From Paraphysomonas bandaiensis (lineage: Eukaryota > Protista > Chrysophyceae), in NCBI GenBank assembly GCA_965644295.1, contig CBFFRP010000036.1, positions 78,050 through 142,049 on the forward strand: a stretch of 64,000 nt of DNA. The letters run 5' to 3'. Below, piece after piece: positions 512 to 29,000 of this stretch (the stretch's first letter is position 1; every line of letters begins with the position of its first letter). The notes beneath the pieces were generated by a model. The model was not told the DNA's origin. It made no database searches and saw only the letters and a list, made by a program, of their open reading frames with translations. The position numbers and the translations under genes are program-made.

Positions 512-601
512 TGTTATGTATTGAATTACCTTAATATCTTAATTGCATTGGAGTTAGTGTATATAGAGGGGTATGTGGATGGAAGATTGCAACAGCAGGA
601 G

Positions 602-672
602 ATGTATGTATGTATGTATGTATGTATGTATGTATGTATGTATGTATGTATGTATGTATGTATGTATGTATG
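602..672. repeat. (TATG)n microsatellite
   Basis: Perfect tetranucleotide run in the intergenic region between the divergent PX and MLF genes. Confidence 0.97.
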
Positions 673-1124
673 ATGTGGCATATATATATATATATCTACT
701 GTATACTATCAGTATTCTCAAGGAGATCTAGCAGATCCACAGATCCATATATTCCATACCATACTTGCGTGGGACACCCATATGGAACCTTATGGTATCT
801 TAAAAAGACCTCTCTTTTCAGTTTATTAATTTTCTTTTGTTTTGTGGTACAGAAATAAACACCTGATTTCTAAGAAAATGCTTGATATTTCCAGACGAAT
901 CTCTGAAATATATCAGAAAAAGCCGATTTCTAGAAATCAAAAGCACTGTGGCCAGTGTATGCAGTCAATAAAGGAGTCATTTCTATGAAAAGTCCAACCG
1001 AAATTTCGAGAAACAGTGTATAAATCCGTGTATTTATAAGAATATAAACCAAAACACAGCATATCAAAACACTCATAATTACATACACCAGACAAGACAG
1101 AAGGATTTATATATACTACAAGAA

Positions 1125-1673: not shown

Positions 1674-2342
1674 CATGATGAGGTTTACAATGTCCACTTT
1701 TCGCTTTTACATTGTTACAGGAAAATGCAGTATTATGAAATATACCTCATCATTATTGACTTATAATTATTAGGGTACTTTCACAACAAATTGAATACGC
1801 AATTTTCAAATTGATTAAATAACATAACAACTTTTTTCATTTCATATGTACTATTTTATGCGAATTGATTGCTCACTGTCTACCACTTGAGAGCTGTCAT
1901 TATCCAGGAACTATGTGCTACATATTCCAGTACTCATAACGCATTCACTCATTTTAATCGACATTGTATTGTTTTATCCACAATTGTCTGATGAGGTGAA
2001 TTCTTTCATGGAGGTATATACTCGACAACGAAGTGCCAAATTCATTGTTCAACTAACGGTAGTAAACACATACACACCAGTAAACAGTGTACGTGTTATA
2101 ACAAGTATCCAAAGGAGAAGCAATAGCAGCGCTAGGAGATCGGCAGTGTCACATATAGCAACACAGAGAGCTATTGATTGCAACTTAAGAGCACACTTAC
2201 TTTTATTTTACTTCCCACTGTTTATGCGAGAAGCCTTGTACACGTTTCTGATGTATGATATTATACTACTTTAACCCTGTTAATTAAGAATCAAGGATGT
2301 CTTGATTGATTTATTGAGAAGTAATAGTGTTATATTTAAAGT

Positions 2343-2649
2343 TATTGAACTACAACCAACTCCTACGTGCGTACTTGAAGTTTGGTAAAGTCAATCGCTA
2401 GTAGTTATCCTGTATTCTATGTAGCAATGAAATACAGAATATACATGACTACAGTATAGGAGTAGCTATTACAAGTATACAAAGAAACTGAAAATATAGT
2501 AGCTGTTAAAGATATGATTTGTAGAACAGAATGTTGATGTTGGTGAATGACGTGGTTCCTAACTCACAGGGCTACAACATCATAAACTTACTATATCTCC
2601 TATAATATCAATCAGTCAATATTGCACTAACTAAAAGCGTAAATTAATA
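2343..2649 (+). repeat. Copia-A 5' LTR (TATT...AATA)
   Basis: Identical by eye to 7158-7464. Confidence 0.95.
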
Positions 2650-5600: not shown

Positions 5601-7109
5601 GCAAAGAAGACTCCACAGAGAACATACTGGATTGAAGCTACCAGGAAGGAGGTGCACAAGCTTGAACGAAGGACATGCTGGAAGATTGTCCGAAGGCCGA
5701 AACACCGAAAAATCATAAAATCTAAATTGGTCTTTAAAGTAAAGCGCGACCATCTTGGAAAAATTAAGAAGTTCAAAGTTCGACTTGTGGCGAAAGGGTT
5801 TACTCAAGAACAAGGAGTCGACTATAATGAGACATTCTCCCCAGTAGCTAAAGGTGTATCATTTAGGCTAGCACTGGCACTGGCTCTGCGATACAATCTG
5901 CAACTCCGTCAACTCGATGTAGAAACGGCATTTCCGTATGCAGATCTGGACGAAGACGTGTTTATGTCTCCACCTGCAGGAATAGATATTCCACAAGGCT
6001 GTTGTTTGAAGATTCTGAAGAGTTTGTATGGCCTAAAACAAGCGCCTCGAAATTGGCATTCAATGCTGAAGGACAGTATAAAGGCGATGGGGTATAAACA
6101 ATGTGTTCTTGACCCATGTTTATTTGTACTCAAGGGTACTGATGATAACCTACATATGATACTTGTGTATGTAGATGATATCATTGTGCTCAGCTCTGAC
6201 AGCCGTCATATTGAAGAAGTCATCAGCGCCTTTAAGACTCAATATGCCATGCAAGATATGGGGGACCTTAAGCATTATTTAGGTCTTACCATTGAGCGTC
6301 ATAATGGCCAGATTAAGTTACATCAGTCTGCATATGCTAAAGATGTTGTGGCCAGATTCAATCACTTGTTGTCAGAAAAGAAGAGACGGTGCAAGGCAAC
6401 CACACCTCTACCACCTGGCCTAAAGTTGTCCAAGGATGCAAAAGAGGAAGAAACTCGAAAACAGAGAGAATACGTTGATGCATTTCCCTATCAATCTGTT
6501 ATTGGTGCCTTAATGTATTTGGCAGTGCATACTAGACCAGACATGGCATATACAGTAAATCTTCTCTCCCGGTTCACCACAAGACCCACGTACGCTGCAT
6601 GTCAAGCTGCTCTGCATACTTTATTGTATTTAGAAAATACAGTTGATCAAGATTGGGCCGGAGATCTGGATACATGCAGATCCACTACAGGGTATATCGT
6701 ATATCTGTGGGGTGCTCCAATTGCATGGCAGTCCAGACTGCAGCCAACAGTGGCTACGTCGACTATGGAAGCTGAATATATGGCTGCATATGCTGCAATT
6801 CAGGAGATTGTATGGATACGAGGGGTGATGACAGAGCTCGGAATTCGTGGATTTGAGCTCAGTAAGAATGCGTCTCCAACAATCTTGAATATGGACAGCA
6901 AGAGTGCGATTGATCTAGCTCAGAACCCGGTAAATCATAAACGTTCCAAGCATATTCGGATCAAGTATCATTGGATTCGAGAGCAAGTGGGAGGCTGTAT
7001 CGTCAGGCTGAATCATGTGCCAACGGCAGAGATGACAGCAGACGTGATGACTAAAGCCTTGTCCGAGAAGCTGCACTATCAGCATGTGCACACTATGGTA
7101 TCGCACTAA
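2649..7109 (+). CDS. Copia gag-pol polyprotein (in-frame deletion at RNase H start)
   Basis: Two CCHC knuckles (CNKCKKLGHFAREC, CEICDIPGHQTKDC), protease YLDSGC, integrase HKRLGH..CNTC and D-D-E, RT YVDD, RNase H DWAG..EAEY..KHI..ADVMTK. Confidence 0.95.
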   Translation: MVADGSFTNVASGSKVPPFEELNFKKFKKFFTSFLMRHNRAHLVLSKDKPRHIHDLDSTVPAGAHMTDAQKKRLRKAKKLWNTRNETAYSFLMEVCNAHPKAGTTAALYEGSTAKGLLQALEERFLNVEKNTVQAEVTKFNSMKITSSQSGAEFVDSVEAQAKILENLGREVTEDDKLTRLKEGLTDKRYSQLAHSLYTANDVTYARASSLIKGYENTSFGKHALQNSGEDSVNQAVDDSKWKEHKRKGRCNKCKKLGHFARECKTPEHVIKRMKGTRSQRKDRDHRNRGDNKTKLPVCEICDIPGHQTKDCFHLKTAKAAVVSSKRGRDSRRETAPYKNKKKPRVSVHDSEDEAGYESMICVEEEVNLAQSMSDVIYLDSGCNKMILTSKNHMTNLQRADRQMSTANKGKLSIHSVGDVGSFKKVYYAPEASKNLVDMKSITDRGCVVTFDNDEVVIRNKTTNKTLIRQRSVNGLYPVRLEDLLQLGEESSAALEEQGFDDQRILWHKRLGHVNYDKLTESDRRGLVDGINLDKKYFRKKHKKTICKCNTCMRSKLTRKNFRTPRQLMNLDNNPKERGVLSADTMEVLNTPSMEGYKHVLLFKHSDAKHVWAYGLKNKTGSEVLKCMKDMVETQLVKEGLQLRRYHADGAGELVGQHVRQYLRETTSTRTVQVTWTPRDTPEMNSLSERTNRTVKEMALAILLDSGMPSVFWFKAVLHAVYLINRLPTKTTKGYISPFEYITGTAPDVSDLKIWGCKAWAIVPKEQRRKEWKEKGKPGYYMGQCQQPVGHQIYIPDLNAIIVAVNAQFDESIPERSQEYFDEIDNLQIDTSETAESVNDYQYLVGLRHLDGHLCYVTTRVIERRGVIVAYRRLDMKGNTTEEQTPIHIKDVVKMTHSTKCQTDKFNSLRNELDQTCNDSDNEQRTPDRSNRGASSTGGADRNPRTEKRPRKKRHIVNVGVLGDVSLFLDSSNSTIKEPQTLAEAKKTPQRTYWIEATRKEVHKLERRTCWKIVRRPKHRKIIKSKLVFKVKRDHLGKIKKFKVRLVAKGFTQEQGVDYNETFSPVAKGVSFRLALALALRYNLQLRQLDVETAFPYADLDEDVFMSPPAGIDIPQGCCLKILKSLYGLKQAPRNWHSMLKDSIKAMGYKQCVLDPCLFVLKGTDDNLHMILVYVDDIIVLSSDSRHIEEVISAFKTQYAMQDMGDLKHYLGLTIERHNGQIKLHQSAYAKDVVARFNHLLSEKKRRCKATTPLPPGLKLSKDAKEEETRKQREYVDAFPYQSVIGALMYLAVHTRPDMAYTVNLLSRFTTRPTYAACQAALHTLLYLENTVDQDWAGDLDTCRSTTGYIVYLWGAPIAWQSRLQPTVATSTMEAEYMAAYAAIQEIVWIRGVMTELGIRGFELSKNASPTILNMDSKSAIDLAQNPVNHKRSKHIRIKYHWIREQVGGCIVRLNHVPTAEMTADVMTKALSEKLHYQHVHTMVSH
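2650..2669 (+). promoter_or_regulatory. Primer binding site, initiator tRNA-Met type
   Basis: TGGTAGCGGATGGTAGTTTC directly after the LTR. It is complementary to CCA, A73, an acceptor stem ending GCU, the T-stem and the GAAA T-loop typical of eukaryotic tRNAi-Met. Confidence 0.8.
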
Positions 7110-7148
7110 GTAGACTTGCTCATCACAGTATATTCTGATATGTTCATT

Positions 7149-7157
7149 GAGTGGGAG
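7149..7157 (+). promoter_or_regulatory. Polypurine tract of Copia-A
   Basis: GAGTGGGAG immediately before the 3' LTR. Confidence 0.8.
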
Positions 7158-7464
7158 TATTGAACTACAACCAACTCCTACGTGCGTACTTGAAGTTTGG
7201 TAAAGTCAATCGCTAGTAGTTATCCTGTATTCTATGTAGCAATGAAATACAGAATATACATGACTACAGTATAGGAGTAGCTATTACAAGTATACAAAGA
7301 AACTGAAAATATAGTAGCTGTTAAAGATATGATTTGTAGAACAGAATGTTGATGTTGGTGAATGACGTGGTTCCTAACTCACAGGGCTACAACATCATAA
7401 ACTTACTATATCTCCTATAATATCAATCAGTCAATATTGCACTAACTAAAAGCGTAAATTAATA
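7158..7464 (+). repeat. Copia-A 3' LTR
   Basis: Direct repeat of 2343-2649, followed by TSD AAAGT. Confidence 0.95.
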
Positions 7465-8039
7465 AAAGTAATTGTCGCAGTTACTTTCTTTAAACAAATT
7501 AAACTTGAATTATTGAAATGGTAACACCAGTATAAAAATCCTAATGTTAAAGAATCGTATACATATACATATCAGCTTGTGAGGCACTTCATATTACACT
7601 TACATATCTAAATATAGTTACATTATTAATATCATCGTATTATGAACCCTTACAGATGCACCTCAATAGAATTGTCCTCGGAGATGTATAATAGTCAGAA
7701 TGATATGGAGTGCACTACAGAATATATTGCACCAATTTTTACAAAGATTAAAGCCCGTCGTGCATTCTTTTATGTAAATAGAACTACAATCATTTATCTT
7801 CTGTTGATTCGACTTTTGATATATCGTCATAGAACTAAGCTGTGCATCTCATACCAAAGCTGGCGTTGTCCCTCCTCTCCGCACCATTGTATTTATCATA
7901 GATATAGACGTGACGATGATCTGCGAGCATCAGCAAGGTAGCGCAATGATTTATTGTAATGATATTTGCAAGGATTCTGTATGCAAAAGAAATTTGTTGG
8001 CAATATAATTCTTGCCTACAAGGTGATGAGCAAATTGTA

Positions 8040-8370
8040 GCATAGCTAACCGACTCCTCTATTATTACACCATAAGAAGTTGATGCATCAAGATCGGAGA
8101 GTAATGGCCGTAACCATAAATCCTCTTTATATACACAAACGTAGAGTAACAGTAGTGTGCAACGATATTGCTGAGATATTACAGTATTGCGAATAAAAAA
8201 GGTGAAAGCTGTGGGTGAACGGAGAGTTAAATGACTACTAGGCGAATCACTCTATATGCCATCCAAATAGCATTGCAAACACTCCTGGGCATGCCAAACA
8301 TAACTACACTTCATGTGACTTTCAGGTACCTGAAAATATGTCTGTTAGTATTCCATGTCTATAGGTTCGA
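8040..8370 (-). pseudogene. Decayed copia RT/RNase H fragment
   Basis: Minus-strand translation with stops: WNTNRHIFRYLKVT (cf. HW.A.KRI.RYLKGT), DGI*SDSPS...RSPTAFTFF...VIS (cf. G+.DSD.A...RSTTG+.F...IS), KEDLWLRPLLSDL. Boundaries are approximate. Confidence 0.7.
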
Positions 8371-9312
8371 CATGTTCGATGAATCATAAATCAAGTAGTC
8401 TAAAGGGAAAAGTAGAGCTTATCTAGTGCGGGGTTTTCCATGGTGACAATGTGGTCTCATTGACGCTTATAAAAATTTATAACACGCCTATCCTCCATAG
8501 ATTTTAAAGCTGACTGTAATATACGTACCCACTATTGTGTGCACATGTACATCATAAGTGTAACTATAAGTGCCACTACTTGGAGAAAACTAAACTAGAT
8601 AGTATTAATGTGGTAAGACTGCACAGTATGTGATTTTGTGCTGTCATTGCCATTCCCATGCATCCATGTATGCATGTATGCATGCACGTTGCCCCTGGTG
8701 CGGTCATTGACTGTTACTTATGGTTGGAATGAATGCTGTTTTTTGCATTTCGTCGTACAGCTGTTATAATAACTGGTGAAGGAAATATTAGATTTTTACA
8801 TATAGAAACTTTCAATTTTTGTATAAAAATCATATGAATTCTCTATGCTTACCAACCAGAATCGTAAGTTTTTATGCAGCAATTTATGTGATTTTTCCAT
8901 ATGAGAAGTGAGTTTCCTCATATGTATCGTACTCCATAGTCTTCCCTTGTACGCTATGTACTACATGTACCACGTACGACAACTCGTATATCCAAGTGCA
9001 CCTACACAATAATGTACCAGTGCGTATCCATGAAAATTTGACGACAGTCCAGGCCTATATATATACGTAAGTTTGTATATGGTTGTATATACCGCAAAAC
9101 AAAGTAGTGGACATACATACATACGTACACATACATACATACATACATACAGATACTATCACCATATATATACATGGTAAACACCTCTCAATATCGTCTA
9201 TTCCCCTCATATATATACAGTTATCATGAAGAATATAATTAAACTGTAAATAACTGAACTTTTCTTATTCAAATAGTCATATCATATCCATCCATACGCG
9301 AATATTACAGAA

Positions 9313-12300
9313 ATGCTTTTACAATATTTAGTTATTTGTGTAATCAGTTTTGCTAATGGACAAACACCCACACAAGCCCCTACACACTTACCTACTCAAT
9401 CACCAACATTTCATCCAACATCTGCACCAATTGAAGGTTTGATTGTTTATATATATGGCTCTTATATATGATTTTATTATTACAGAGTGTGGTAATAGAT
9501 CGACGGATGTTATTAATATGATATCAAAGACAGAGCAAGAGAATGTTTGGATTGAAGGTGGTTTTACGACTGCAGGAGATCAGGATTGGGTTTCAGTATC
9601 TACTATTTTTGATACTTTTCAAAATGCAGTTGTATTCATTAGTCTTCCAGAGATTTCTGGTGAAACATCAAATGATGGGTACCCTGCCATTGCACGCGTG
9701 CGTAACGCAACAACTTCTGGGAGGATTAATTTCGAGTTCAAGTTATATCAAGCCAACGATAGTTACTGTTTGAAAACTTGGAGAGTCCCTGAACCGATAT
9801 CTCCTGAAGTAAAGTTATCTTGGATAGTCGTCGAGCAGGGTGCATTCAATCTCACTGGTAGCTTTTTTATGATCGGAAAAGGACCGATTAATCGTGTTAG
9901 TTCGGCATCGTCTGACCAAGATAATTTTGTGACATTGGACTACCCAGTTGGTTGTGTGTCGACCAGTGAAAGGTGTGCATTTCCGCAAAGTGCTAAAGTT
10001 GGTATCATTCTTCAACTTCAAACTCTTGTGTATGACCGTTTATTGATTCCTCGTGGCTTCAATATTGCCAAACGGTTTGCAAGGATTGTATTGCAGCCGC
10101 ATGACTCCATTGACGAAAGCTACTATGTGATGCCTAATCATGAGCAGCTCGCATTCATGGCTTTCGAAACTGGGTTCTTAATCAGCTGTGTTGAGCGTAT
10201 GTCTTTCGAAACTCACTATTATACAGATGTTACAAACATTAAGCTGGACATCGACTATGCTTTCACCTATGTTCTTCCTCCTGGAGTTTACGGCACGGTT
10301 AGTACATCCAGAAGTCTTGCGGATTCCACTGGATTGCGTGCTTTCGACCGCACCGTAAGCGGATCCAGCATTATTACCCAGGAGGATCAGTGTTATGATG
10401 AGGAAACTGATCATACAACTGGGGAGGGAGTTTCAGTAATGATTGTAGGAGAACAGCAATTCGTGGTGTCTTGTACACTGTGTAAAGCGGTATTTACTCC
10501 TGATGTCACCAGCGCTCCAACCAGAGCTCCAACTAGAAACCCGACATTCACACCGACCTCTTCACCCACCTTTCTCCCAACTAAGGCACCTACATTTTCC
10601 CCAACGGTGTTACCCACACATGCGCCTACGTCCGCTCCTACCGTTGCCCCCACAAACAACCCGACTGGTCTGCCGACAGGACTTCCTTCCAGTGTTCCAA
10701 CCAAAACACCAACAGGACTCCCTTCCAGTGCTCCAACCAAAACACCAACAGGACTCCCTTCCAGTGCCCCAACTAGAACACCAACAGGACTCCCTTCCAG
10801 TGCCCCAACTAGTACACCAACAGGACTACCTTCCAGTGTTCCAACTAGTAAACCAACAGGACTCCCTTCCAGTGTTCCAACTAGTGCACCAACAAGACTC
10901 CCTTCCAGTGTTCCAACTAGTAAACCAACAGGACTTCCTTCTAGCAGCCCTACAGCAATACCTACTGGTGTTCCGACTGAAGCTCCGTCGAGCGTGCCCT
11001 CGGCACTGCCAAGTGCTGGCCCCACATCCGACCCTACGTTCTTTCCAACGCGTAGGCCGACCGCTGCACCAACTAGCGTTCCAACCTCGGCTCCTTCTTT
11101 GGCGCCATCATCATCAAGTCCAACACTGATACCCACTGCTGCGCCATCTATTTGTACTGAAGTTTTTAATAGAAGCGCTGATGTGATAGATATGATATCT
11201 AAGAAAACACGGGAATCGGTTTGGATTGAGACTGGATTTTTTTCTGCTGATGACCAAATATGGGTGTCGATTACGTCCACAGTGAGTACTTTTAGTTCCC
11301 CTGTTGTATTCGTCAGTCTTCCAGAAATCCCGGGCGATACTTCTAGTGAAGGAATTCCTTCCATTACACGCGTCAGAAATGTGCAACAAGTAAATGGTAA
11401 TGTTGTATTTGAGGCGAAGTTATATCAAGCGAACGATAGCTTTTGCTCTAAGCAGTGGAGGGTACCTGAGCCGATTTCACCTCCAGTCAGTTTGGCATGG
11501 ATGGTGGTAGAACAAGGTGCATTCAACCTCTCCAATCATTTTTTTATGATTGGAAGTGGGCCTATTACTCGTCAAAACGACGATGTGAAGGATCTATCCA
11601 ATTTTGTAAGGTTTGACTATCCTGTGAATTGTGAGTCCTCCACAGTGAGTTGCGCGTTCCCGAATGGTGTGCAGATCGGGATTGTTTTACAGCTTCAAAC
11701 TCTAGTATACGACAGGCTGATAATACCTCGAGGTTATTCTATCCAACGACGGCACTCCAAAATTGTACTTCAGCCCCACGACTCGAGTGACTCAAGCTAT
11801 TATGTGATGACAACCCCTGAAACTCTCGCGTACATGGCCTTTGAAACGGGGGTTGCGATCAGTTGTGTAGAGAGAATGACTTTTGAGACAATTAGGTGGG
11901 GTTCCGTCACACATATTAAACAGGATTTCGAGTATACCTATTCGTACGATGTTCCTCCTGGAGTGTACGGGACCATCGGAACGTCAACAAGTCTTGCTGA
12001 TAGTACAGGTCTTAGAGTATTTTCGAGAACAATCGACGGGGCTAGTATAATAACCCAAGAAGATCAGTGTGTCGACGAAGAAACGACACACACAACTGGG
12101 GAAACGGTCTATGCAATGGTTGTTGGTCAGCAGAGTACGCGTTCTTCTTGTACCATTTGCAGTGCTGTATATAATGGGGAGTCGACTTCAAACGGTCCCA
12201 GTCATTCCCCAACGAAAAGTCCAACTCGAAACCCCACTGTTTCACCAACCCGTCGTCCGACATCCCAACCAACGCGAAACCCGACTTCATCACCTACCCG

Positions 12301-15300
12301 TCGACCAACATCTTCTCCAACGAGAAGCCCCACTCGAAAGCCGACAGCCCAACCTACGTCATCGCCAACCCGCTTGCCGACGTCTTTTCCGACGAGACCA
12401 CCCACAGGTTTGCCGACGTCACAGCCTGCTGTTGTGCCAACCCACTTACCTACATCCCCACCCTCGCGTTCTCCAACAGTTGTGCCGACATCTGCTCCCA
12501 CTGTTAGCCCTTCCTTTGTCCCAACCAACTCACCAATCCTATGTCCTACGACGAAACCTACAAGTGTACCTACCATTGCACTAACGGATTCACCAACTTT
12601 CAGCCACACAGTTTCGCCGAGCCTATCTCCAACGCAATTCCCAACAAACGCACCGACTGCATTCCCTTCCACAGAGCCAACAGTTGTACCAACATCTTCA
12701 CCATCGTTTTCACCAACTTTTGTTCCCACTACTTCACCAACCCATGTACCGACAACGAAACCCAGCGTTTCGCCCACTACTGCACCAACAGCCTCATCAA
12801 CTGTATCTCATCATCCAACAGTTGCCCCTACTCCTTGTCGGGAAGTTACGAACTCTACGACTGATGTTATTGATATGTTTACTGGTCTTCCATTTACTGA
12901 TTTCTGGATGGAAGGGGGATTTACTACTGCTGGCGACCAGGAATGGGTTACTATATCAACGATACTGGATTCGTTTAAGGACGCTGTAGTATTTGTTAGT
13001 CTTCCCGAGATTCCTGGTTCCACCTCAGATGATGGATATGCTGCAATAGCCCGTGTGCGCAACGTAGTAAATACAGGGAGGGTATCTTTCGATACCAAAC
13101 TTTATCAGGCGAATGACAGCTACTGTTCGAAGGAATGGCGTATTCCTGTGCCTATTAGTGGTATAAGCTTGTCTTGGTTGGTTGTTGAGAACGGTGCATT
13201 CAATATGAGTGGCCAGTATTTTATGATTGGAAATGGTGCAATAACACGGCAGAACAGTGATCCAACTGATTCATCTAACTTTCCTCGTTTCGATTACGCG
13301 TATGGTTGTGGATCTTCGACGGAACGCTGTGCATTCAACGAGGGTACCGATGTTGGAATAATTATGCAGCTACAAACGGTAGTGTATGATCGATTGCTTA
13401 TACCTCGTGGGTTTAATGTGAAACTTCGGTTTGCGAGAATTGTTTTACAGCCCCATGATTCCAGCGACCCTAGTTATTACGAGATGCATGATCCCGAGAC
13501 TATCGCATATATGGCGTTTAGTACTGGTTTAGATGTGAGCTGTGTGGAGGGATTGACCTTTGAAACTCGGTTGTATGAATCCGTGACGAATATCAAACGT
13601 GATATCGATTTCCGGTATACATATGTTCTTCCTCCAGGCATATACGGTTCGTTGGGTACGTCGATCAGTTTGGCTGATTCTACCGGTCTCCGCGCTTTTG
13701 ATCGCACGGTAACCGGTGCTAGTATTATCACACAAGAAGACCAGTGCGTGGATGCTGAGACAGATCATACCACTGGTGAGACGGTATTCACATTGGTCGT
13801 TGGTGAACAGAATACTGAGGCTTCGTGTGTCGTATGTAAGGCATTGTTTACTCCTGAGATCAATCGAGATCCTACGGCTAATCCTACTATAATTCCGACT
13901 CAGATACCGACGTCTAGTCCAACACTACATCCAACTTCTGTTCCAACAGTGCTCCCAACTTCTGTTCCAACACTACATCCAACTTCTGTTCCAACACTAC
14001 ATCCAACTTTTGTTCCAACAGTGCTCCCAACTTCTGTTCCAACACTACATCCAACTTCTGTTCCAACATTGTTGCCGACTGGGTCTCCATCTTTGAGCCC
14101 TGTATCCTCTCCAACAGTATTACCCACGGCTAGTGATTATGCGATGTCTTGTGTCTCCGATTGTCCTGATATTAGCATTGAGAATAATGAGACGTGTTTG
14201 TATGTGGCATTAACTGATACATTTGGTGATGGCTGGGGTGAGTCTGTGAATTTTACGTACACGAGATTTTTAGGTGGTCAGGAACTAGATGCGCAAGCTT
14301 TTTCTCTAAATTGTGAGTGTCCGAGAGTAGTAGGTTGCGTACCAGCTCTTGATTCATCTGCTGAGCAGCTACATGTATTTTCAATGGTCACTGATACTGT
14401 TCCTGATTACTTTTGGGAAATTCAATGGTCAGTTCAGCTTGTTGAGAATGGTGATTTTGGAAAGACGTATTACGGAGGATTTAATACAACTGCTACTTTT
14501 GATTATGCATCCTCTAGTAGTCAATTCAGCTTGTTGCACTCAGAGAATCTTTGGTCATATCCTGAAAGCTGTTCCTTCGATAAGTATGACATGTCCGATG
14601 ATTTGACAGCAGATTTTATTTTGAATTTGTATGGGGGAAATGGAAGTCGGTTCTACAGCAATGCAGACGAAGAGATGGCCTATTTGAGCTCTGCATATTA
14701 CATTACCCCTGCTGATGACAGAAGTATGTTGAATGGTTTCAGTTGGGCAGCGTGTGAGCTGAATTCTTCATATACGAGTCTCGAATGTTTGGAGAACGGA
14801 ACATACATATTCCGAACTACAGGTGTATGTGATAGGAGTGCTGATAATTATACTTGGTCATTTTGCGGAGAATCGGGAGGGCCTCAAGTACAGTTGGAAT
14901 TTTCTGTTGTTAACGGTGATTGCATTGCTGGAGAGAAGCAATCTTTTAGTGAGGTTTGTGGAGAATCTTTTGTGCCTAGTGGGCTACCTTCTCATATTCC
15001 CACAAATTCGCCGAGCCTATCTCCAACGCAGTTCCCAACAAATGCACCGACTGCGTTCCCTTCCACAGAGCCAACAATTGTACCCACCAATGCACCAACT
15101 GCATTCCCTTCCACAGAGCCAACAGTTGTACCAACATCTTCACCATCGTTTTCACCAACTTTAGTTCCCACTACTTCACCAACCCATGTACCGACAACGA
15201 AACCCAGCGTTTCGCCCACTACTGTACCTACAAGTGCCCCAACCCATGAACCGACAACAGAACCCAGTGTTGTTCCAACGAGAACGCCAACGCATGTACC

Positions 15301-18300
15301 GACAACGAAACCCAGCGTTTCGCCTACTACTGCACCAACAGCCTCATCAACTGTATCTCATCATCCAACAGTTGCCCCTACTCCTTGTCGGGAAGTTACG
15401 AACTCTACGACTGATGTTATTGATATGTTTACTGGTCTTCCATTTACTGATTTCTGGATGGAAGGTGGATTTACTACTGCTGGCGACCAGGAATGGGTTA
15501 CTATATCAACGATACTGGATTCGTTTAAGGACGCTGTAGTATTTGTTAGTCTTCCCGAGATTCCTGGTTCCACCTCAGATGATGGATATGCTGCAATAGC
15601 CCGTGTGCGCAACGTAGTAAATACAGGGAGGGTATCTTTCGATACCAAACTTTATCAGGCGAATGACAGCTACTGTTCGAAGGAATGGCGTATTCCTGTG
15701 CCTATTAGTGGTATAAGCTTGTCTTGGTTGGTTGTTGAGAACGGTGCATTCAATATGAGTGGCCAGTATTTTATGATTGGAAATGGTGCAATAACACGGC
15801 AGAACAGTGATCCAACTGATTCATCTAACTTTCCTCGTTTCGATTACGCGTATGGTTGTGGATCTTCGACGGAACGCTGTGCATTCAACGAGGGTACCGA
15901 TGTTGGAATAATTATGCAGCTACAAACGGTAGTGTATGATCGATTGCTTATACCTCGTGGGTTTAATGTGAAACTTCGGTTTGCGAGAATTGTTTTACAG
16001 CCCCATGATTCCAGCGACCCTAGTTATTACGAGATGCATGATCCCGAGACTATCGCATATATGGCGTTTAGTACTGGTTTAGATGTGAGCTGTGTGGAGG
16101 GATTGACCTTTGAAACTCGGTTGTATGAATCCGTGACGAATATCAAACGTGATATCGATTTCCGGTATACGTATGTTCTTCCTCCGGGCATATACGGTTC
16201 GTTAGGTACGTCGATCAGTTTGGCTGATTCTACCGGTCTCCGCGCTTTTGATCGCACGGTAACCGGTGCTAGTATTATCACACAAGAAGACCAGTGCGTG
16301 GATGCTGAGACAGATCATACCACTGGTGAGACGGTATTCACATTGGTCGTTGGTGAACAGAATACTGAGGCTTCGTGTGTCGTATGTAAGGCATTGTTTA
16401 CTCCTGAGATCAATCGAGATCCTACGGCTAATCCTACTATAATGCCGACTCAGATACCGACGTCTAGTCCAACACTACATCCAACTTCTGTTCCAACAGT
16501 GCTCCCAACTTCTGTTCCAACACTACATCCAACTTTTGTTCCAACAGTGCTCCCAACTTCTGTTCCAACACTACATCCAACTTCTGTTCCAACATTGTTG
16601 CCGACTGGGTCTCCATCTTTGAGCCCTGTATCCAATCCAACAGTATTACCCACGGCTAGTGATTATGCGATGTCTTGTGTCTCCGATTGTCCTGATATTA
16701 GCATTGAGAATAATGAGACGTGTTTGTATGTGGCATTAACTGATACATTTGGTGATGGCTGGGGTGAGTCTGTGAATTTTACGTACACGAGATTTTTAGG
16801 TGGTCAGGAACTAGATGCGCAAGCTTTTTCTCTAAATTGTGAGTGTCCGAGAGTAGTAGGTTGCGTACCAGCTCTTGATTCATCTGCTGAGCAGCTACAT
16901 GTATTTTCAATGGTCACTGATACTGTTCCTGATTACTTTTGGGAAATTCAATGGTCAGTTCAGCTTGTTGAGAATGGTGATTTTGGAAAGACGTATTACG
17001 GAGGATTTAATACAACTGCTACTTTTGATTATGCATCCTCTAGTAGTCAATTCAGCTTGTTGCACTCAGAGAATCTTTGGTCATATCCTGAAAGCTGTTC
17101 CTTCGATAAGTATGACATGTCCGATGATTTGACAGCAGATTTTATTTTGAATTTGTATGGGGGAAATGGAAGTCGGTTCTACAGCAATGCAGACGAAGAG
17201 ATGGCCTATTTGAGCTCTGCATATTACATTACCCCTGCTGATGACAGAAGTATGTTGAATGGTTTCAGTTGGGCAGCGTGTGAGCTGAATTCTTCATATA
17301 CGAGTCTCGAATGTTTGGAGAACGGAACATACATATTCCGAACTACAGGTGTATGTGATAGGAGTGCTGATAATTATACTTGGTCATTTTGCGGAGAATC
17401 GGGAGGGCCTCAAGTACAGTTGGAATTTTCTGTTGTTAACGGTGATTGCATTGCTGGAGAGAAGCAATCTTTTAGTGAGGTTTGTGGAGAATCTTTTGTG
17501 CCTAGTGGGCTACCTTCTCATATTCCCACAAATTCGCCGAGCCTATCTCCAACGCAGTTCCCAACAAATGCACCGACTGCGTTCCCTTCCACAGAGCCAA
17601 CAATTGTACCCACCAATGCACCAACTGCATTCCCTTCCACAGAGCCAACAGTTGTACCAACATCTTCACCATCGTTTTCACCAACTTTAGTTCCCACTAC
17701 TTCACCAACCCATGTACCGACAACGAAACCTAGCGTTTCGCCTACTACTGCACCAACAGCCTCATCAACTGTATCTCATCATCCAACAGTTGCCCCTACT
17801 CCTTGTCGGGAAGTTACGAACTCTACGACTGATGTTATTGATATGTTTACTGGTCTTCCATTTACTGATTTCTGGATGGAAGGTGGATTTACTACTGCTG
17901 GCGACCAGGAATGGGTTACTATATCAACGATACTGGATTCGTTTAAGGACGCTGTAGTATTTGTTAGTCTTCCCGAGATTCCTGGTTCCACCTCAGATGA
18001 TGGATATGCTGCAATAGCCCGTGTGCGCAACGTAGTAAATACAGGGAGGGTATCTTTCGATACCAAACTTTATCAGGCGAATGACAGCTACTGTTCGAAG
18101 GAATGGCGTATTCCTGTGCCTATTAGTGGTATAAGCTTGTCTTGGTTGGTTGTTGAGAACGGTGCATTCAATATGAGTGGCCAGTATTTTATGATTGGAA
18201 ATGGTGCAATAACACGGCAGAACAGTGATCCAACTGATTCATCTAACTTTCCTCGTTTCGATTACGCGTATGGTTGTGGATCTTCGACGGAACGCTGTGC

Positions 18301-21300
18301 ATTCAACGAGGGTACCGATGTTGGAATAATTATGCAGCTACAAACGGTAGTGTATGATCGATTGCTTATACCTCGTGGGTTTAATGTGAAACTTCGGTTT
18401 GCGAGAATTGTTTTACAGCCCCATGATTCCAGCGACCCTAGTTATTACGAGATGCATGATCCCGAGACTATCGCATATATGGCGTTTAGTACTGGTTTAG
18501 ATGTGAGCTGTGTGGAGGGATTGACCTTTGAAACTCGGTTGTATGAATCCGTGACGAATATCAAACGTGATATCGATTTCCGGTATACGTATGTTCTTCC
18601 TCCGGGCATATACGGTTCGTTGGGTACGTCGATCAGTTTGGCTGATTCTACCGGTCTCCGCGCTTTTGATCGCACGGTAACCGGTGCTAGTATTATCACA
18701 CAAGAAGACCAGTGCGTGGATGCTGAGACAGATCATACCACTGGTGAGACGGTATTCACATTGGTCGTTGGTGAACAGAATACTGAGGCTTCGTGTGTCG
18801 TATGTAAGGCATTGTTTACTCCTGAGATCAATCGAGATCCTACGGCTAATCCTACTATAATGCCGACTCAGATACCGACGTCTAGTCCAACACTACATCC
18901 AACTTCTGTTCCAACACTACATCCAACTTCTGTTCCAACACTACACCCAACTTCTGTTCCAACAGTGCTCCCAACTTCTGTTCCAACACTACATCCAACT
19001 TTTGTTCCAACAGTGCTCCCAACTTCTGTTCCAACACTACATCCAACTTCTGTTCCAACATTGTTGCCGACTGGGTCTCCATCTTTGAGCCCTGTATCCT
19101 CTCCAACAGTATTACCCACGGCTAGTGATTATGCGATGTCTTGTGTCTCCGATTGTCCTGATATTAGCATTGAGAATAATGAGACGTGTTTGTATGTGGC
19201 ATTAACTGATACATTTGGTGATGGCTGGGGTGAGTCTGTGAATTTTACGTACACGAGATTTTTAGGTGGTCAGGAACTAGATGCGCAAGCTTTTTCTCTA
19301 AATTGTGAGTGTCCGAGAGTAGTAGGTTGCGTACCAGCTCTTGATTCATCTGCTGAGCAGCTACATGTATTTTCAATGGTCACTGATACTGTTCCTGATT
19401 ACTTTTGGGAAATTCAATGGTCAGTTCAGCTTGTTGAGAATGGTGATTTTGGAAAGACGTATTACGGAGGATTTAATACAACTGCTACTTTTGATTATGC
19501 ATCCTCTAGTAGTCAATTCAGCTTGTTGCACTCAGAGAATCTTTGGTCATATCCTGAAAGCTGTTCCTTCGATAAGTATGACATGTCCGATGATTTGACA
19601 GCAGATTTTATTTTGAATTTGTATGGGGGAAATGGAAGTCGGTTCTACAGCAATGCAGACGAAGAGATGGCCTATTTGAGCTCTGCATATTACATTACCC
19701 CTGCTGATGACAGAAGTATGTTGAATGGTTTCAGTTGGGCAGCGTGTGAGCTGAATTCTTCATATACGAGTCTCGAATGTTTGGAGAACGGAACATACAT
19801 ATTCCGAACTACAGGTGTATGTGATAGGAGTGCTGATAATTATACTTGGTCATTTTGCGGAGAATCGGGAGGGCCTCAAGTACAGTTGGAATTTTCTGTT
19901 GTTAACGGTGATTGCATTGCTGGAGAGAAGCAATCTTTTAGTGAGGTTTGTGGAGAATCTTTTGTGCCTAGTGGGCTACCTTCTCATATTCCCACAAATT
20001 CGCCGAGCCTATCTCCAACGCAGTTCCCAACAAATGCACCGACTGCGTTCCCTTCCACAGAGCCAACAATTGTACCAACAATTTCAATTGCACCTACTAT
20101 TTTTCCTACGTCAGAGCCAAGCATATCACCTGCTACTGCACCAACTGCTCTACCGACTATCTCATTTGCACCCAGCACTTTACCGATAAGCGCACCATCG
20201 CTTGGACCTACATCATCTCCAACATGTACACCAACACTTTCTTTAAGTATTCCAACTTCTGGACCAACGATTTCGCCGACAACTGAACCAACCATTTCTC
20301 AATCAACTGTTCCAACTACTGTATCGACGTGTACGCCAACTTGTGCATCGTCAGCTACATCGCTTTCACCCACGAGTGAGCGGACCACTTTCCCGACGAG
20401 TGCACCTACCATCCCGCCCACTTCTGCACCAACTGCTGTATCAACTTCGCCAACAAGTGCACCGACATCTGGACCAACCAGTGCTCCGCCCACGTCGCCA
20501 ACATCTACACCAACAAGTGCACCTACTTGTGCACCAACAATTTCACCTACGAATGAGCCGACAACTTCACCGACGAGTGCTCCAACCGCTTTACCATCAA
20601 CTTCGCCAACAAGTGCACCGACATCTGGACCAACCAGTGCGCCGCCCACGTCGCCAACATCTACACCTACAAGTGCATCTACTTGTGCACCAACAATTTC
20701 ACCTACGAATGAGCCGACAACTTCACTGACGAATGATCCAACCGCTTTACCATCAACTTCGCCAACAAGTGCACCTACTTGTGCACCAACTATTTCACCT
20801 ACGAATGAGCCGACAACTTCACCGACGAGTGCTCCAACCGTTTTACCATCAACTTCGCCAACAAGTGCACCGACATCTGGACCAACCAGTGCTCCGACCC
20901 CGTCGCCAACATCTACACCAACAATTTCACCTACGAATGAGCCGACAACTTCACCGACGAGTGCTCCAACCGCTTTACCATCAACTTCGCCAACAAGTTC
21001 GCCAACTTGTGCACCAACTATTTCACCTACGAGTGGGCCGACAACTTTGCCGACGAGAGCTCCAACTGCTTTACCATCAACTTCTCCAACAAGTGCTCCG
21101 ACCCCGTCGCCAACATCTACGCCAACAAGTTCACCTACTTGTGCACCAACAATTTCACCTACGAATGAGCCGACGACTTCACCGACGAGTGCTCCAACCG
21201 CTTTACCATCAACTTCGCCAACATCTACACCAACAAGTTCGCCTACTTGTGCACCAACTATTTCACCTACGAATGAGCCGACGACTTCACCGACGAGTGC

Positions 21301-24300
21301 TCCAACCGCTTTACCATCAACTTCGCCAACAAGTTCGCCTACTTGTGCACCTACATCTGGACCAACCATTTCGCCGACAATTTTTCCCTCTCTATCACCA
21401 ACATGTGCACCTACTTGTGCACCAACCAACTCACCTTCGAGTGTACCTCCTACTGAATCACCTACGGTATCTCCTACTATGGTTGGTGATACGAATTCCC
21501 CAACTGTAACGCCTACAGTGTCTCCTACTGTAACAGGTGCTACGAATGCTCCAACTGCGTCACCCACAGTATCTCCTACTGTAACAGGTGCTACGAATGT
21601 TCCAACTGAATCGCCTACAGTGTCTCCTACTGTAACAGGTGCTACGAATGCTCCAACTGCATCACCCACGGTATTTCCTACTATGGTCGGTGCTACGAAT
21701 GTTCCAACTGAATCACCTACGGTGTCTCCTACTATGGTTGGTGCTACAAATGCTCCAACTGCATCGCCCACGGTATCTCCTACTATGGTTGGTGATACGA
21801 ACGCACCTACCGCATTTCCCACCGTGGTTAATGAAACGAACATACCTACTATATCTCCCACGGTTTCTCCTACTATAGTTGGTGACACGAATGCTCCAAC
21901 TGCGTCACCCACAGTATCTCCTACTATGGTTGGCGATACGAATTCTCCAACTGCATCACCTACGGTATTCCCTACTATGGTTAATGAAACTAATGTACCT
22001 ACTGAATCTCCCACTGTATCACCTACAGTGTCTCCTACTGTAACAGGTGATACGAACGCACCTACCGCATTTCCCACCGTGGTTAATGAAACGAATGTAC
22101 CTACTGCATCACCTACGGTTTCTCCTACTATGGTTGGTGATACGAATTCCCCAACTGTAACGCCTACAGTGTCTCCTACTATGATTGGTGATACGAATGC
22201 TCCAACTGCATCACCCACGGTATTTCCTACGATTGTTAATGAAACGAACGCACCTACCGCATTTCCCACCGTGGTTAATGAAACGAATGTACCTACTGCA
22301 TCACCTACGGTTTCTCCTACTACGGTTGGTGATACGAATTCCCCAACTGCATCACCTACGGTATTCCCTACTATGGTTAATGAAACTAGTGTACCTACTG
22401 AATCTCCCACTGTATCCCCTACTATGGTTGGTGATACGAATGCTCCAACTGTATCACCTACAGTGTCTCCTACTGTAACAGGTGATACGAACGCACCTAC
22501 CGCATTTCCCACCGTGGTTAATGAAACGAATGTACCTACTGCATCACCTACGGTTTCTCCTACTATGGTTGGTGATACGAATTCCCCAACTGTAACGCCT
22601 ACAGTGTCTCCTACTGTAACAGGTGCTACGAATGCTCCAACTGCATCACCCACGGTATTTCCTACGATTGTTAATGAAACGAACGCACCTACCGCATTTC
22701 CCACCGTGGTTAATGAAACGAATGTACCTACTGCATCACCTACGGTTTCTCCTACTACGGTTGGTGATACGAATTCCCCAACTGCAATGCCTACAGTGTC
22801 TCCCACTGTGGTTGGTGCTACGAATGCTCCAACTGCATCACCCACAGTATCTCCTACTGTGGTTGGCGATACGAATTCCCCAACTGTATCTCCCACGGTA
22901 TTTCCTACTATGGTTAATGAAACGAATGCTCCAACTGAATCTCCCACAGTATCCCCTACTGTGGTTGGTGATACGAATGCTCCAACTGTGTCACCTACAG
23001 TGCCTCCTACTGTAACAGGTGCTACGAATGCTCCAACTGCATCACCTACGGTATTTCCTACTGTGGTTGGTGATACGAACGCACCTACCGCATTTCCCAC
23101 GGTACCCCCTACTATGGTTGGTGATACGAATGCTCCAACTGTATCACCCACAGTGTCTCCTACTGTAACAGGTGCTACAAATGCTCCAACTGCATCACCT
23201 ACGGTATTTCCTACTATGGCTAATGAAACGAATGCTCCAACTGTATCACCTACAGTGTCTCCTACTGTAACAGGTGATACAAATGCTCCAACTGCATCAC
23301 CCACGGTATTTCCTACTATGGCTAATGAAACGAAAGTACCTACTGCTTTTCCGACATTATATAATGAGACTGGCGGTATTTCTCTTTCACCTACCTTCCA
23401 GCCGAGTATATCTTCCTCGTCATCGTCAGTTGGTAACGTTTTGTGTCGAATTGCTGGGCAGTTCAATCTTAGTACACGTCCTGTAAATGGTTGGACTTGC
23501 ACGGATGATATGAATCCGATAACTGAAAATGGACGCGATGTGTGTGATGATAACTGGACTGGCATTTTATGCGATGATGGTGGGAAAATTTCATCTCTTG
23601 ATCTTTCAGGTCTTGGCTTATCTGGTACTGTCTCTTCGGATATAGGCCAACTTACTGCTCTTCAAAGTCTTGATTTGTCATCGAATAGCCTGCGAGGTCC
23701 TCTTCCGATTGAATTGGGACAATTAACTAGTCTAGAAGCTTTCGATATACATTCAAATGAATTTGGTTCATTAAATCGAAGGCTTGGACAATATTCTCCT
23801 TATAATCGCAAACTTCAAACTTCCTTCGTGGATGAAAGTTTTACAGTTATCGCGAATATGTCGTCACTTACATTTCTAGATGTCGGGTCAAATGGCCTGA
23901 CGGGCAGAGTTCCATCATCGCTGTGTGCTCTCCCACTGAGAACTCTAATTCTGGTTTCTACCACCGCAACAACAACCGCTAGAAATAGTTTTGACTGTAT
24001 CGCGGAGTGTTTGACAGAAAAGGAAGATTTAACGTTGGTTGTTTCTGGTCTTTCCCCCTGTGTAGATACTGCTTCCCCGACTCCGAATCCTACTCGCAGC
24101 CCAACTGTAGAAGGAAATCAAGCTAGGTCATCTGGTTCCGAGCCTGTGTTGGGCCAGAACGGGGTGAGTTTTGTGTCTGCTGCAGCGGCATTGTTTTTGC
24201 TGCTTTTGCTGTGCTGCTGTTACACATTTTGTATTCGGCGACGTAATCAGCAAGATGTCATTCGAAAGTATAGAGATGACTCTATTGTAGCCCGGCCTAC

Positions 24301-24973
24301 ACAGGTTAATTTAATGACCCTTCGAAATGCTGAGAAGAAGCAAGCGTCCGTTTCTTCGTCATCGTTCTCGTCATCTTCGGAAAGCTCGGATTCCAGTGAT
24401 GAGAGTGCTGATATTGATGACATTGGAGTTCTTGAGCCAAATGCCAAGCAGAAATCTATCGCTGTCACTGTGTGGAACAATGAGCTTTTGGATTTTCATA
24501 AAGGTAATGTAAAAGTATCTTCTGACGTGGCAAAAATGCAACAAAAGGACAAAATATTTAGTTTTGCCGACGTCTACAGTTCAAGTGATGAGCCTGATGA
24601 GGATGATATCCCAATGGCGGATGTTGATGACTTAACGCAGTATTCTGACTCTGTTGATGAGTTCGGTGTCCCTTACAGTAGGGATACCTTGACATATAAT
24701 TCGAGAGGTGGTAGTTATTCAACATATAGGTCTAGAGAAAGCTATATGACGCAAAGTGTCAGGGAGGGGCCTTCAGATGCAACTCGATCAACCTACACGG
24801 AGTCTTTACGAGAAACTTATAAAATTCCATCAGTTTCCTCAATGGACAGTGCTACACTCACACGAGGTACAGACGACCAGGATGAGCGCGATTCGACGAG
24901 GAAAACTTTGACGAGAAAGTCTTCTTCAAGAGCTGAAATGTACAGGCAGCCCTCGGAAACATTTGATCTTTAA
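9313..24973 (+). CDS. Giant type I membrane protein (~5203 aa): signal peptide, 5x triple H-lectin-like module, 3x DxFGDGW module, PT mucin stalks, LRR, TM, Ser/acidic tail; exons 9313-9436 and 9486-24973
   Basis: Upstream exon MLLQYLVICVISFANGQTPT... splices via a 49-nt GT..AG intron (phase 1) into the 5176-aa ORF. LRR with C..W.G+.C cap at about 23440-24060. Hydrophobic TM VSFVSAAAALFLLLLLCCCYTFCI followed by RRR. Confidence 0.9.
12613..20075 (+). repeat. Three near-identical ~2.4-2.55-kb intragenic tandem repeats
   Basis: Identical antisense and alternative-frame ORFs recur at 12811/15361/17779 and 14349/16875/19341. Units differ mainly in the copy number of short PT-coding repeats. Confidence 0.95.
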
Positions 24974-25766: not shown

Positions 25767-26085
25767 TGTTGAGTTCTGCTATATGAGAGCAATTGAAAGC
25801 TGTAGTTATAAGGTATTTAAATTACTGTATTATACAGTTGTAGTCTTGTTAATCGTATTGTGAGAATGAATGACGATAAGCACATAGCGGTAAAACGGAA
25901 TATTGTGACGATGCAAGTTGTAGTGACGATGTAAGATCGTCGTACGAGAAATGAGTGGTAGTGGAGACAACATGATATTGATGAATGATAAGAGACATTG
26001 ATTATAATTTATAATTCTCAGCTTTGAGTATAAGTTACCTTCTGTTGTTAAGTTAATACTTCTCATATAATGTCAAACCTTGACA
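25767..26085 (+). repeat. Copia-B 5' LTR
   Basis: Identical by eye to 30980-31298; the same 78-aa antisense ORF appears in both. Confidence 0.95.
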
Positions 26086-29000
26086 TGGTAGCAGACGGTA
26101 GTTCCGCAAGTAGTTCGGAATGGAAACACCTTCCGAAGTTCGATCAGTTCGGTGTTGTGAACTGGACGAAGCGATTGAGAGTTTGGCTTATGAGAAAGAA
26201 TCGGAACCATCTTGGGTTGGAAGAGCGACCGCATCGACCTGCTGACAATGCGTCCACAGCTGTGAAAAACAAGTATAAGGAAGACCTCGACAAGTGGTTG
26301 GAGAGAAAAGACACCTGCATCAGTTCCATCTTCGAAGCTGTTCAACCTGTTGCGGAGGCGCTTGAGATTGTTGATCAATACTTCCGAGAGAAGGACATGC
26401 TTCCACCTGATGATCCCGATAAGGAGATGTTAGCAAGTGAATTGGTAAATAAATTGGTTATTAGATTTCGTGGGGAAACCCAGTACGAATTGGTGGAACT
26501 GAATAAACAGTTTGCGTCATTTAGAATTCTACAGGGGGAGCTGGTGTGTACAGCCATTGATCGACTGAACGGAATTGTCCAAAAAATGACGGAACTTGGT
26601 GAGCCGCCAACTGACGTATCCAAAAAAACGAAGCTGCAGACTGCGCTGGAAACGAGGAAGGATCTGGAGCAGCTGTACACAAACATCTACCTGAAAGGTG
26701 ATATTTCATTTAATGAGATGATCACCATTTGTAGGCGCTTCGACCAGGCAAAGGGTCTACCACAGGAGTCTTCTGCACCGGAAGTACATTGGAATTCTTC
26801 TGATCAAGAGGTAACATGCTCATACTCTAAATGTGGAAAACGAGGTCACACGCAGAAGAACTGCTGGATGAAGAAGAAAGATCTGAAGATCTCCCAAATG
26901 AAGCGCAATGGTAAAAACAAGCATCGAAGCCAACAAGCAGAATCCAAAAGAAGTAAGTCAAAGAATGGCGCTGATGATGATGGATGTTTTGTGTGTGGCG
27001 TATCTGGACATCGAGCTCATGAATGCAGACATCGAGCTCAAGTTCGAAAAACAAGGAAAGCGGAGGATTCTGTTAACAAAAAACGACTTTTTTCCGAAAA
27101 AAACGGTACGATGGAAAGGCCCATCAAAAAGAGCTCGGACTGGAATCGTTATCTTCAAAGAGACGAGCAAGAGGATGATTCTGTGCACATGTTGTTATAT
27201 GATGAATCGAGTAACTTAGAAGTGAATGTTGCAGATGAGGTGCTGCATACTTCTGAAGACATTGTATTTCTAGACAGCTGCGCGTCGAAACAACTCTTCA
27301 TCATCAAGAACAGTGATATTCTACAGACATTTGTTGCAGACGAAGGAGCCATTCAGACAACCAAAGCGGGATCCAGCTTACGATATACTGGCTCAGGCAA
27401 CTATGGTGACTGGACAAAATTAAAGGTATGCCCCGACTCAGTCAAGAATATTTGTTCGGGAGGGATGCTTCGTACGCTTGGATATGGACTTCAGCTGCTA
27501 GAGACCCCAAAAATAGTGCGATTGGATAATGCAGAAGTTGTTCTTGAAGCTAGGTATTCAGATAATGGAATGCCCTTCGTTGATCTAAAGGACTTGTTGG
27601 AGTTACCTGACTTGACGAGTTTAGCTGCAGAAGTACATCTATCGGATAAAACAAATGAAGACCCTCTGGAATTGCTTCACAAACGATGCGGGCATGTCAG
27701 CAAGCGCAAGCTATTAGAAGCTTTCAAACATCGGTTGTTCACAGGGAGTGGCCTTAACAGATCTCATCTGAGTAAGAAGAGTCTTCAGAAAACCAAGGGT
27801 ATCTGCAAAGCCTGTGCAAAGTCGAAGATTACCAGAATCTCGTTTCCTGGGAAGAGTGATGAAGAGCTACAGGCGACAAGGTTTCTGGAAAAAGTAACTG
27901 TCGATATAGGAGTATATTTCAATTGTCCATCTCGACAGGGATACCGGTATGTATTAGCGTTGACAGATGTGGCCACCAAGGAATGCTGGGAGTTTCCGTT
28001 GAAAACTCGGACCGCAAGTGAGGTGTTGGAGCACATTAGGAATTGGGTCGAGGTTCTTCTTCCCAAGTATCCAGGAGTTCATCGACTATCTGTGTATCAT
28101 GCCGATGGGGGAGCCGAACTCATTGATAAGTCTATTCAGGAGTATCTTCACAGCAAGTTTGGCACCTCAATTACGTGGAGCTCTACGGACTCACCTGAGA
28201 TGAATGGCGTGTCTGAGAGACGTTTTCGAACCGCGGGAGAGATGACTCTTGCAATGCTGTCAGATGCTGGATTCCCAGTTCCATTCTGGTGGGATGCCTA
28301 CGTATATGCATCTGAAATTATTCGCATGATGCCCACTCGGACCTACCGCGGATGGATGTCTCCCATGGAGTGTGTACCTGGAGGTTCTGTTCCGGATTTA
28401 TCCAGTTTACGTCGATGGGGGTGTAAAGCTTATGTGAAGACTCCCAGGGGTGATCGTCGAAAAAATTGGCAAGGCAAATCGCAGATTGGATATTTTTTAG
28501 GTCTCTCCAAAAAGAAGAGGGGATACAGAATATGGCTAGGAGAGTCCGAAGTTGTGTCAATACATGTGTTATTCGACGAAAGCATTCCCCCCAGAGAGAA
28601 GGAGTATTTCGAGGAGCTGGAGGCTGCGTTAGTTAAACATGATCCCCAGGCTCGACAGGTTGAAGAGTTCAACCATTTGATTGGATCTTACCATACCGAT
28701 GAGGGTTTCCTGTTTAGGACTACGAGAGTCGTGGTTCGGAAAGGTTTGATCGTGGCTTATAGAGCCTTAGTAACTGCTGGTAGAGAGCAGTTGGAGGAGA
28801 AGACTCCGATACATATAGCTGATGTAGTGAAACTAACTCAGTCGTATAATTTGCGCAGGTGGCACGAAAATCCTGCGACCCGTGACGATGGGGCAGGTGG
28901 TGAGGAGCGATCGATGCCGGCTGGGGGTGGGACACCCAAACAGTCTACGGCAGATGACTCATCAGGGAGTGAGCAGACTCCATGTGCCTTACCCGAGAGA

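Follow-up and report, generated by a model that had tools for sequence, protein, structure and literature searches.

Positions 9313-24973 of the forward strand of the window (the whole stretch of DNA that was analysed, 64,000 nucleotides (nt) of contig CBFFRP010000036.1) are occupied by a single gene, whose two exons give a spliced product of 5203 amino acids (aa), ∼551 kDa before glycosylation. The product is built around five copies of a ∼341-aa triple lectin-like module, which we term H3, and three copies of a ∼284-aa Cys-rich module, termed G. A stop-free open reading frame (ORF) of 5176 codons extends from 9443 to 24973. The ATG of the signal peptide (9313) lies in a different frame from this large ORF, and the two are joined in frame by the removal of an intron with its GT at 9437 and its AG at 9485. 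Transcript contigs of four public runs were placed on the 8900-12700 region. The contigs extended from 9195 to 12700, and none of them fell on 8900-9153. Contigs that skipped the intron were found in two runs of a cultured organism and in one marine metatranscriptome recorded as RNA, and in a second, marine plankton metatranscriptome the contigs matched the gene at 99-100%. Since the 49-nt intron is skipped in RNA-derived contigs, the gene is transcribed and spliced. We conclude that the gene is genuine, consists of two exons and is expressed, and that it encodes a predicted type I membrane glycoprotein. Its features, including the leucine-rich repeats (LRRs) and the transmembrane (TM) helix, are as follows.

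9195..9312, + strand: 5′ untranslated region, minimal extent (transcript-derived contigs begin at 9195-9228)
9313..9436, + strand: exon 1, with the ATG at 9313, the signal peptide MLLQYLVICVISFANG and a 25-aa Pro/Thr spacer
9437..9485, + strand: intron, 49 nt, GT..AG, skipped by contigs from three runs
9486..24973, + strand: exon 2, ∼15.5 kb, including the stop codon at 24971-24973
9486..10501, + strand: H3 module 1
10502..11149, + strand: Pro/Thr/Ser linker, with a 36-nt x 7.4 tandem repeat
11150..12178, + strand: H3 module 2
12179..12832, + strand: Pro/Thr/Ser linker
12712..20100, + strand: three tandem copies of a cassette (H3, linker, G, linker), 2.4-2.55 kb each
12833..13855, + strand: H3 module 3, the copy used for the structure model (pLDDT 95.5, pTM 0.93; see below)
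14132..14983, + strand: G module 1, Cys-rich, with an FGDGWG motif
15383..16405, + strand: H3 module 4, protein identical to module 3
16658..17509, + strand: G module 2
17801..18823, + strand: H3 module 5, protein identical to module 3
19124..19975, + strand: G module 3
19976..23434, + strand: mucin-like stalk, 1157 aa
23435..24169, + strand: juxtamembrane ectodomain, a Cys-rich cap followed by plant-type LRRs (LxxLxLxxNxLxGxLP)
24170..24232, + strand: TM helix FVSAAAALFLLLLLCCCYTFC, 21 hydrophobic aa, followed by RRR
24233..24970, + strand: cytoplasmic tail, 246 aa

H3 modules 1 and 2 are 62% identical to each other and 60-64% identical to module 3, and all five modules terminate in EDQC.D.ET.HTTGE.V. 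The three cassette copies begin at 12712, 15262 and 17680 and share 98.7-99.3% nucleotide identity, with indels confined to the Pro/Thr linkers. Within the H3 coding parts of the three copies all differences (at 12916, 13621, 13636 and 13654) are synonymous, a pattern consistent with recent duplication, or with gene conversion, under constraint. The stalk consists of 61% Pro/Thr/Ser (T 25.6%, P 20.4%, S 14.8%), arranged in units of 12, 24 and 96-228 nt and then in a 51-nt unit repeated ∼37 times. The stalk contains 13 N-x-S/T sequons and is probably O-glycosylated. A long Pro/Thr/Ser tandem-repeat region between globular domains and the membrane is what defines a membrane-tethered mucin, and the stalk has this position. 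The LRR region is short, with two clear motifs flanked by degenerate ones, and scored 31.8 bits with Pfam LRR_1 (cut-off 20.6 bits). The tail is acidic and Ser-rich (S 17.5%, D 11.8%), and a Pfam scan of its 246 aa detected no domain and no kinase. The protein therefore combines extracellular LRRs, a single TM helix and a kinase-less tail, as LRR receptor-like proteins do. Other long ORFs overlap the gene at 20299-23565 (− strand, 1088 aa), 10411-11364 (− strand) and 20733-21509 (+ strand, another frame); they lie over the Pro/Thr repeats, whose composition most likely gave rise to them, and are probably not genes.

Most of this anatomy had been anticipated in the original prediction, made from the letters and their ORFs. 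The gene start that it gave, 9313, proved to be the ATG of the signal-peptide exon, joined to the rest through the 49-nt intron, and the five modules of ∼335 aa that it described are ∼341 aa long, lie within a few bases of where it had put them, and do share the ending EDQC.D.ET.HT.GE.V. The 15 lectin-like units, the stalk of more than 1000 aa, the LRR, the TM helix and the kinase-less tail were likewise found. Its inventory was right for the five H3 modules and had overlooked the three Cys-rich G modules. Of the transcript that it expected to span the gene, at least the first 3.4 kb was found, in spliced form.

The relationships of the H3 module were analyzed by sequence. H3 was searched exhaustively with phmmer against 1.84 billion representatives, which returned 225 relatives; 81 of these had E-values below 1e-30, and those relatives that bear a name carry the sole label "hypothetical protein". 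The weakest among the matches listed were bacterial proteins with the Pfam H_lectin family (PF09458), at 3.6e-41, 2.8e-16, 7.3e-11 and 4.2e-6, the strongest of these carriers being a GDSL esterase from Desulfoplanes. A hidden Markov model (HMM) built from 49 eukaryotic modules matched the bacterial tandem units with independent E-values down to 3.5e-17, and sometimes spanned a whole triplet, as in the cluster representative of the Desulfoplanes esterase (HMM positions 36-326 on residues 1310-1555). In the bacterial proteins, the stretches assigned to Pfam H_lectin coincided with units resembling the first, second and third subrepeats of H3 (S1, S2 and S3), so that the homology of H3 to PF09458 carriers falls on their H_lectin units. 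Pairwise alignment placed the bacterial EEQS.D.E..H opposite the QEDQC.D.ET.H of H3, a common motif after the last-but-one strand. Comparison of the subrepeat alignments with hhalign gave weak matches in register for S1/S2 (E 4e-4) and S2/S3 (E 4e-3) and none for S1/S3. After strand e of each subrepeat an in-register motif recurs (LYQANDS, VLQPHDS and ITQEDQC).

The structure of H3 module 3 was modelled with AlphaFold2 (AF2) from the 49-sequence alignment. The model was all-beta, with a predicted local distance difference test (pLDDT) score of 95.5 and a predicted template-modelling (pTM) score of 0.93, and divided into three consecutive units, each of about six strands arranged in the same order (residues 24-120, 121-231 and 232-327). 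In the ESM Atlas it matched a 328-aa bacterial cluster with PF09458 (template-modelling score 0.86 over 315 aa) and, at ∼0.7, clusters in which H_lectin is combined with Reprolysin, Big or glycoside hydrolase domains; a language-model search gave 0.97 to the same 328-aa cluster. The whole H3 model also aligned with engineered single-chain trimers (adiponectin, APRIL/BAFF and Cbln1) and with the C-terminal domain of PCSK9. The three subrepeats per module, claimed originally from a residue pattern, are thus seen mainly in the AF2 structure, with the weak hhalign matches and the recurring motif beside it. The proposed likeness to H-type lectins, in the tandem-triple form of prokaryotes, gained support from both sequence homology and fold matches. 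Together, the alignments and the predicted fold support H3 as a triple H-type-lectin-like unit with relatives among the tandem H_lectin proteins of prokaryotes.

The G module gave no Pfam match, and its homologues were confined to proteins of the same family. In its model (overall pLDDT 75) the N-terminal half was well predicted as a beta-sandwich and the C-terminal half with less confidence; fold searches with this model found no convincing relative. The sequence suggests that G comprises two related halves.

To place the gene among its relatives, the genome assembly (62.6 Mb in 669 contigs) was searched with the module profile. At least 92 H3 matches were obtained, most of them within open frames of 2300-5700 aa, and the giant paralogues number roughly 20 or more. 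Their builds include H3-Gx7-stalk-LRR-TM, H3x4-stalk-LRR-TM, H3x3-G-multi-TM, arrays of H3x6, and H3x4-G-REJ-multi-TM (REJ at 3e-32). On contig C380 (positions 1-10000) a tandem array holds at least six nearly identical ORFs of 417 aa with a period of 1257 nt, each encoding a signal peptide and one H3. These small proteins are probably secreted; they may represent the head in soluble form. Outside this genome the commonest build was signal peptide-H3-G-TM (860-1100 aa), which includes a Paraphysomonas transcript. A 1267-aa H3-G-LRR-TM homologue represents a single-copy version of the gene, another assembly encodes a homologue of 4092 aa with eight H3 modules, and H3-REJ homologues also occur outside this genome. 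Among 34 distinct H3 modules of the genome, the core and the polar motifs were almost invariant, with variation at the ends only. Hypervariable loops, a sign of diversifying specificity, were sought among these 34 paralogous modules and none was found. The invariance of the head favours one class of ligand and disfavours a diversified recognition repertoire; what evolution appears to have varied is the valency and the chassis (LRR-TM, REJ/multi-TM or secreted) rather than specificity.

The genome yielded no matches to the light-harvesting (PF00504) or PsbO (PF01716) families. At least seven silicon-transporter loci were found; one of the transporters shares 91% identity with a Paraphysomonas MMETSP1103 transporter and 66% with one from Ochromonas. 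The lack of light-harvesting and PsbO matches, together with the Paraphysomonas-like silicon transporter, therefore points to a colourless chrysophyte that belongs to Paraphysomonas or is close to it. The silicon transporters and an ESM Atlas match labelled Bacillariophyta might suggest a diatom, a reading that is rejected for these reasons. Members of this genus are phagotrophic and silica-scaled. Paraphysomonas has been described as a marine obligate heterotroph (bioRxiv 10.64898/2026.10.27.762293).

In the window, intact-looking polyprotein ORFs of copia-type long terminal repeat retrotransposons flank the gene on both sides (2649-7109, 1486 aa, and 26070-30836, 1588 aa), with gag, zinc knuckle, integrase and RVT_2 regions. 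A second giant ORF (35605-48696, 4363 aa) begins with Pro/Thr-rich repeats and contains a REJ domain (5e-35) and no H3 head; its translation has Cys-rich stretches and several hydrophobic segments, and by sequence it looks like a polycystin-1-type receptor. The 237-aa ORF just upstream of it (34792-35505) may be a further exon. On the reverse strand, 52728-54446 encodes a 572-aa ORF with a match to DUF5898 (1.2e-14).

Among the closest known systems are the H-type lectins (PF09458), such as Helix pomatia agglutinin (HPA; 2CCV), Dictyostelium discoidin I/II (2W94) and octocoral SLL-2 (3WMP). H3 differs from them in that it fuses three mutually diverged, predicted sandwiches in one chain, and in that it gives no direct Pfam match. 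Furthermore, known H-type lectins are small soluble homotrimers or hexamers, whereas H3 forms the heads of a 5203-aa membrane protein. The Desulfoplanes formicivorans GDSL esterase (WP_083254587.1, of which the 90%-cluster representative was analyzed) resembles H3 in its tandem H_lectin units and in the common EEQ..D.E..H motif. However, bacterial tandem H_lectin proteins share only 21-30% identity with H3, their units are appended to enzymes and lack the eukaryotic disulphide framework, and their arrays are not always triplets. The receptor-binding tips of contractile-tail fibres, namely the foot of the R2 pyocin fibre PA0620 (6CL6) and gp53 of phage AP22 (4MTM; Gp53-like_C), are also among the closest systems.

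The remainder of the chain recalls other receptors. Sea-urchin REJ protein (suREJ) and polycystin-1 (PKD1) are receptors that combine a C-type lectin with REJ. Paralogues of the gene, in this genome and elsewhere, likewise set their heads on REJ and a multi-pass TM region, but the gene itself lacks REJ and has a single TM helix, and the type of lectin differs. As in plant-type LRR receptor-like proteins, Cys-capped plant-type LRRs stand beside a single TM helix with no kinase; unlike in those proteins, the LRRs are few and lie at the base of an ectodomain of ∼4700 aa, and the tail has no homology to theirs. The long Pro/Thr/Ser tandem-repeat stalk is shared with membrane-tethered mucins.

In HPA and discoidin the sugar is bound at the interfaces between three subunits. 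The explanation that we favour, and consider fairly probable as a whole, is that the gene encodes an H3-headed type I membrane glycoprotein of 5203 aa which acts as a glycan-binding feeding receptor or adhesin. As modelled, each H3 head would be a single-chain pseudo-trimer of three H-type-lectin-like six-stranded beta-sandwiches, and the G modules would be lineage-specific. From the tip to the membrane the protein carries, after the signal peptide, five H3 heads with three G modules interleaved with the last three of them, then the mucin stalk, the LRR cap, the TM helix and a non-catalytic tail, with Pro/Thr/Ser linkers between the modules. By analogy with the H-type lectin trimers, each head would bind carbohydrate between its three subunits, which would provide as many as three sites in each head and 15 low-affinity sites in the chain. 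Held some hundreds of nanometres off the membrane, these sites could capture glycan-coated particles with high avidity. Because the host is a phagotrophic chrysophyte near Paraphysomonas, the most likely targets would be surface polysaccharides of bacterial or algal prey. The LRR, TM helix and tail would serve as the anchor of the protein and might also bring in partners from the cytoplasm. For phagotrophic protists, "feeding receptors" of the lectin type have been put forward (PMC3768488), and in another marine flagellate lectin-domain adhesion genes are regulated with the feeding state (PMC7852580).

Several results weigh against this explanation. A match to PF09458, one of the checks put forward in the original prediction, failed to appear: the Pfam scan gave no match in any H3 module of the gene even at E≤1, and in the wider family the H_lectin model reached at best E 0.054, in 2 of 49 members, which is below its gathering score of 24 bits. 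Neither the module profile nor a profile of S3 plus bacterial units matched anything in HMM searches of the PDB sequences. The other check, AlphaFold with Foldseek, had a divided outcome: the three-unit all-beta model and its ESM Atlas similarity to PF09458 were obtained, but Foldseek of the whole H3 against the PDB returned nothing at E≤1e-3, only weak rows for the PCSK9 C-terminal domain. No residue-level alignment was obtained by which the N-acetylgalactosamine-binding residues of HPA and discoidin could be mapped onto H3. In addition, the transcript evidence covers the first 3.4 kb only, and the number of 2.4-kb units, which are 99% identical, hinges on the assembly.

The main rival explanation is a structural matrix or scale-anchoring mucin, which would hold the cell's siliceous scales, or its own glycosylated coat, to the plasma membrane, with H3 and G cross-linking or self-binding instead of recognising prey. 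We regard it as rather unlikely. It draws on the many silicon transporters of the genome and on the silica scales borne by Paraphysomonas, the closest named relative, as well as on the very long Pro/Thr/Ser stalk, the many Cys-rich modules and the tandem array of small signal-peptide-bearing single-H3 proteins; the invariance of the H3 core across paralogues would also fit a constant self ligand. The same heads are, however, found on a REJ/polycystin-like multi-pass chassis, which is more sensor-like than anchor-like. It is improbable, in our judgement, that H3 keeps an H-lectin-like fold and binds protein, mineral or lipid instead of carbohydrate, or merely serves as a rigid spacer or oligomerisation knob. 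The unmet Pfam H_lectin threshold and the unmapped binding residues would agree with such a role, the fold is common to phage fibre tips and other trimeric knobs with varied ligands, and a common fold alone proves no function. Yet the closest relatives are bacterial H_lectin units on glycoside hydrolases, esterases and proteases, the context of carbohydrate-binding modules, and invariant polar motifs occupy equivalent loops of all three H3 subunits. That the giant ORF arose through faulty assembly or annotation, or is a pseudogene decaying in a region rich in transposons, might be suspected from the copia elements on both flanks and from 99%-identical 2.4-kb repeats that are difficult to assemble, but is very improbable given 15.5 kb open without a stop, an intron correctly spliced in three runs, only synonymous substitutions between the H3 repeat copies, and many paralogues plus the 4092-aa homologue in another assembly with the same build.

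The original prediction had not recognised this architecture from any described protein. Its homologues are labelled only "hypothetical protein", no Pfam model covers the module, and no published description was found; a literature search found no paper that links H-type lectins to stramenopiles or describes the H3 family. The claim of novelty stands as far as description goes, and is limited in that the gene does not stand alone: its family comprises at least 92 modules in the genome and has homologues elsewhere. The H-lectin superfamily itself is known, and the fused triple unit is present, unremarked, in bacterial annotations. What appears to be undescribed, in the databases and literature searched, is the eukaryotic H3 receptor family, with its architectures and its expansion.

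The grazing of marine heterotrophic flagellates controls bacterial and picoalgal stocks, and how they recognise and select their prey is largely unknown in molecular terms. The gene and its giant paralogues are concrete candidates for this task, with a conserved, confidently folded lectin-like head, a build suited to surface display, and expression both in culture and in ocean metatranscriptomes. We propose only tentatively that the H3 giants are the long-sought prey-recognition system of a marine bacterivorous flagellate. They would form a lineage-specific lectin repertoire that is based on a triple H-lectin unit of bacterial type and whose avidity is adjusted through very recent duplications of whole head cassettes within a gene. 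The gene documents such cassette-wise expansion within one gene, in three 2.4-kb units of 99% identity, and the H-type lectin superfamily would be extended by it to membrane receptors of stramenopiles, with a predicted fused pseudo-trimer form that they share with bacteria.

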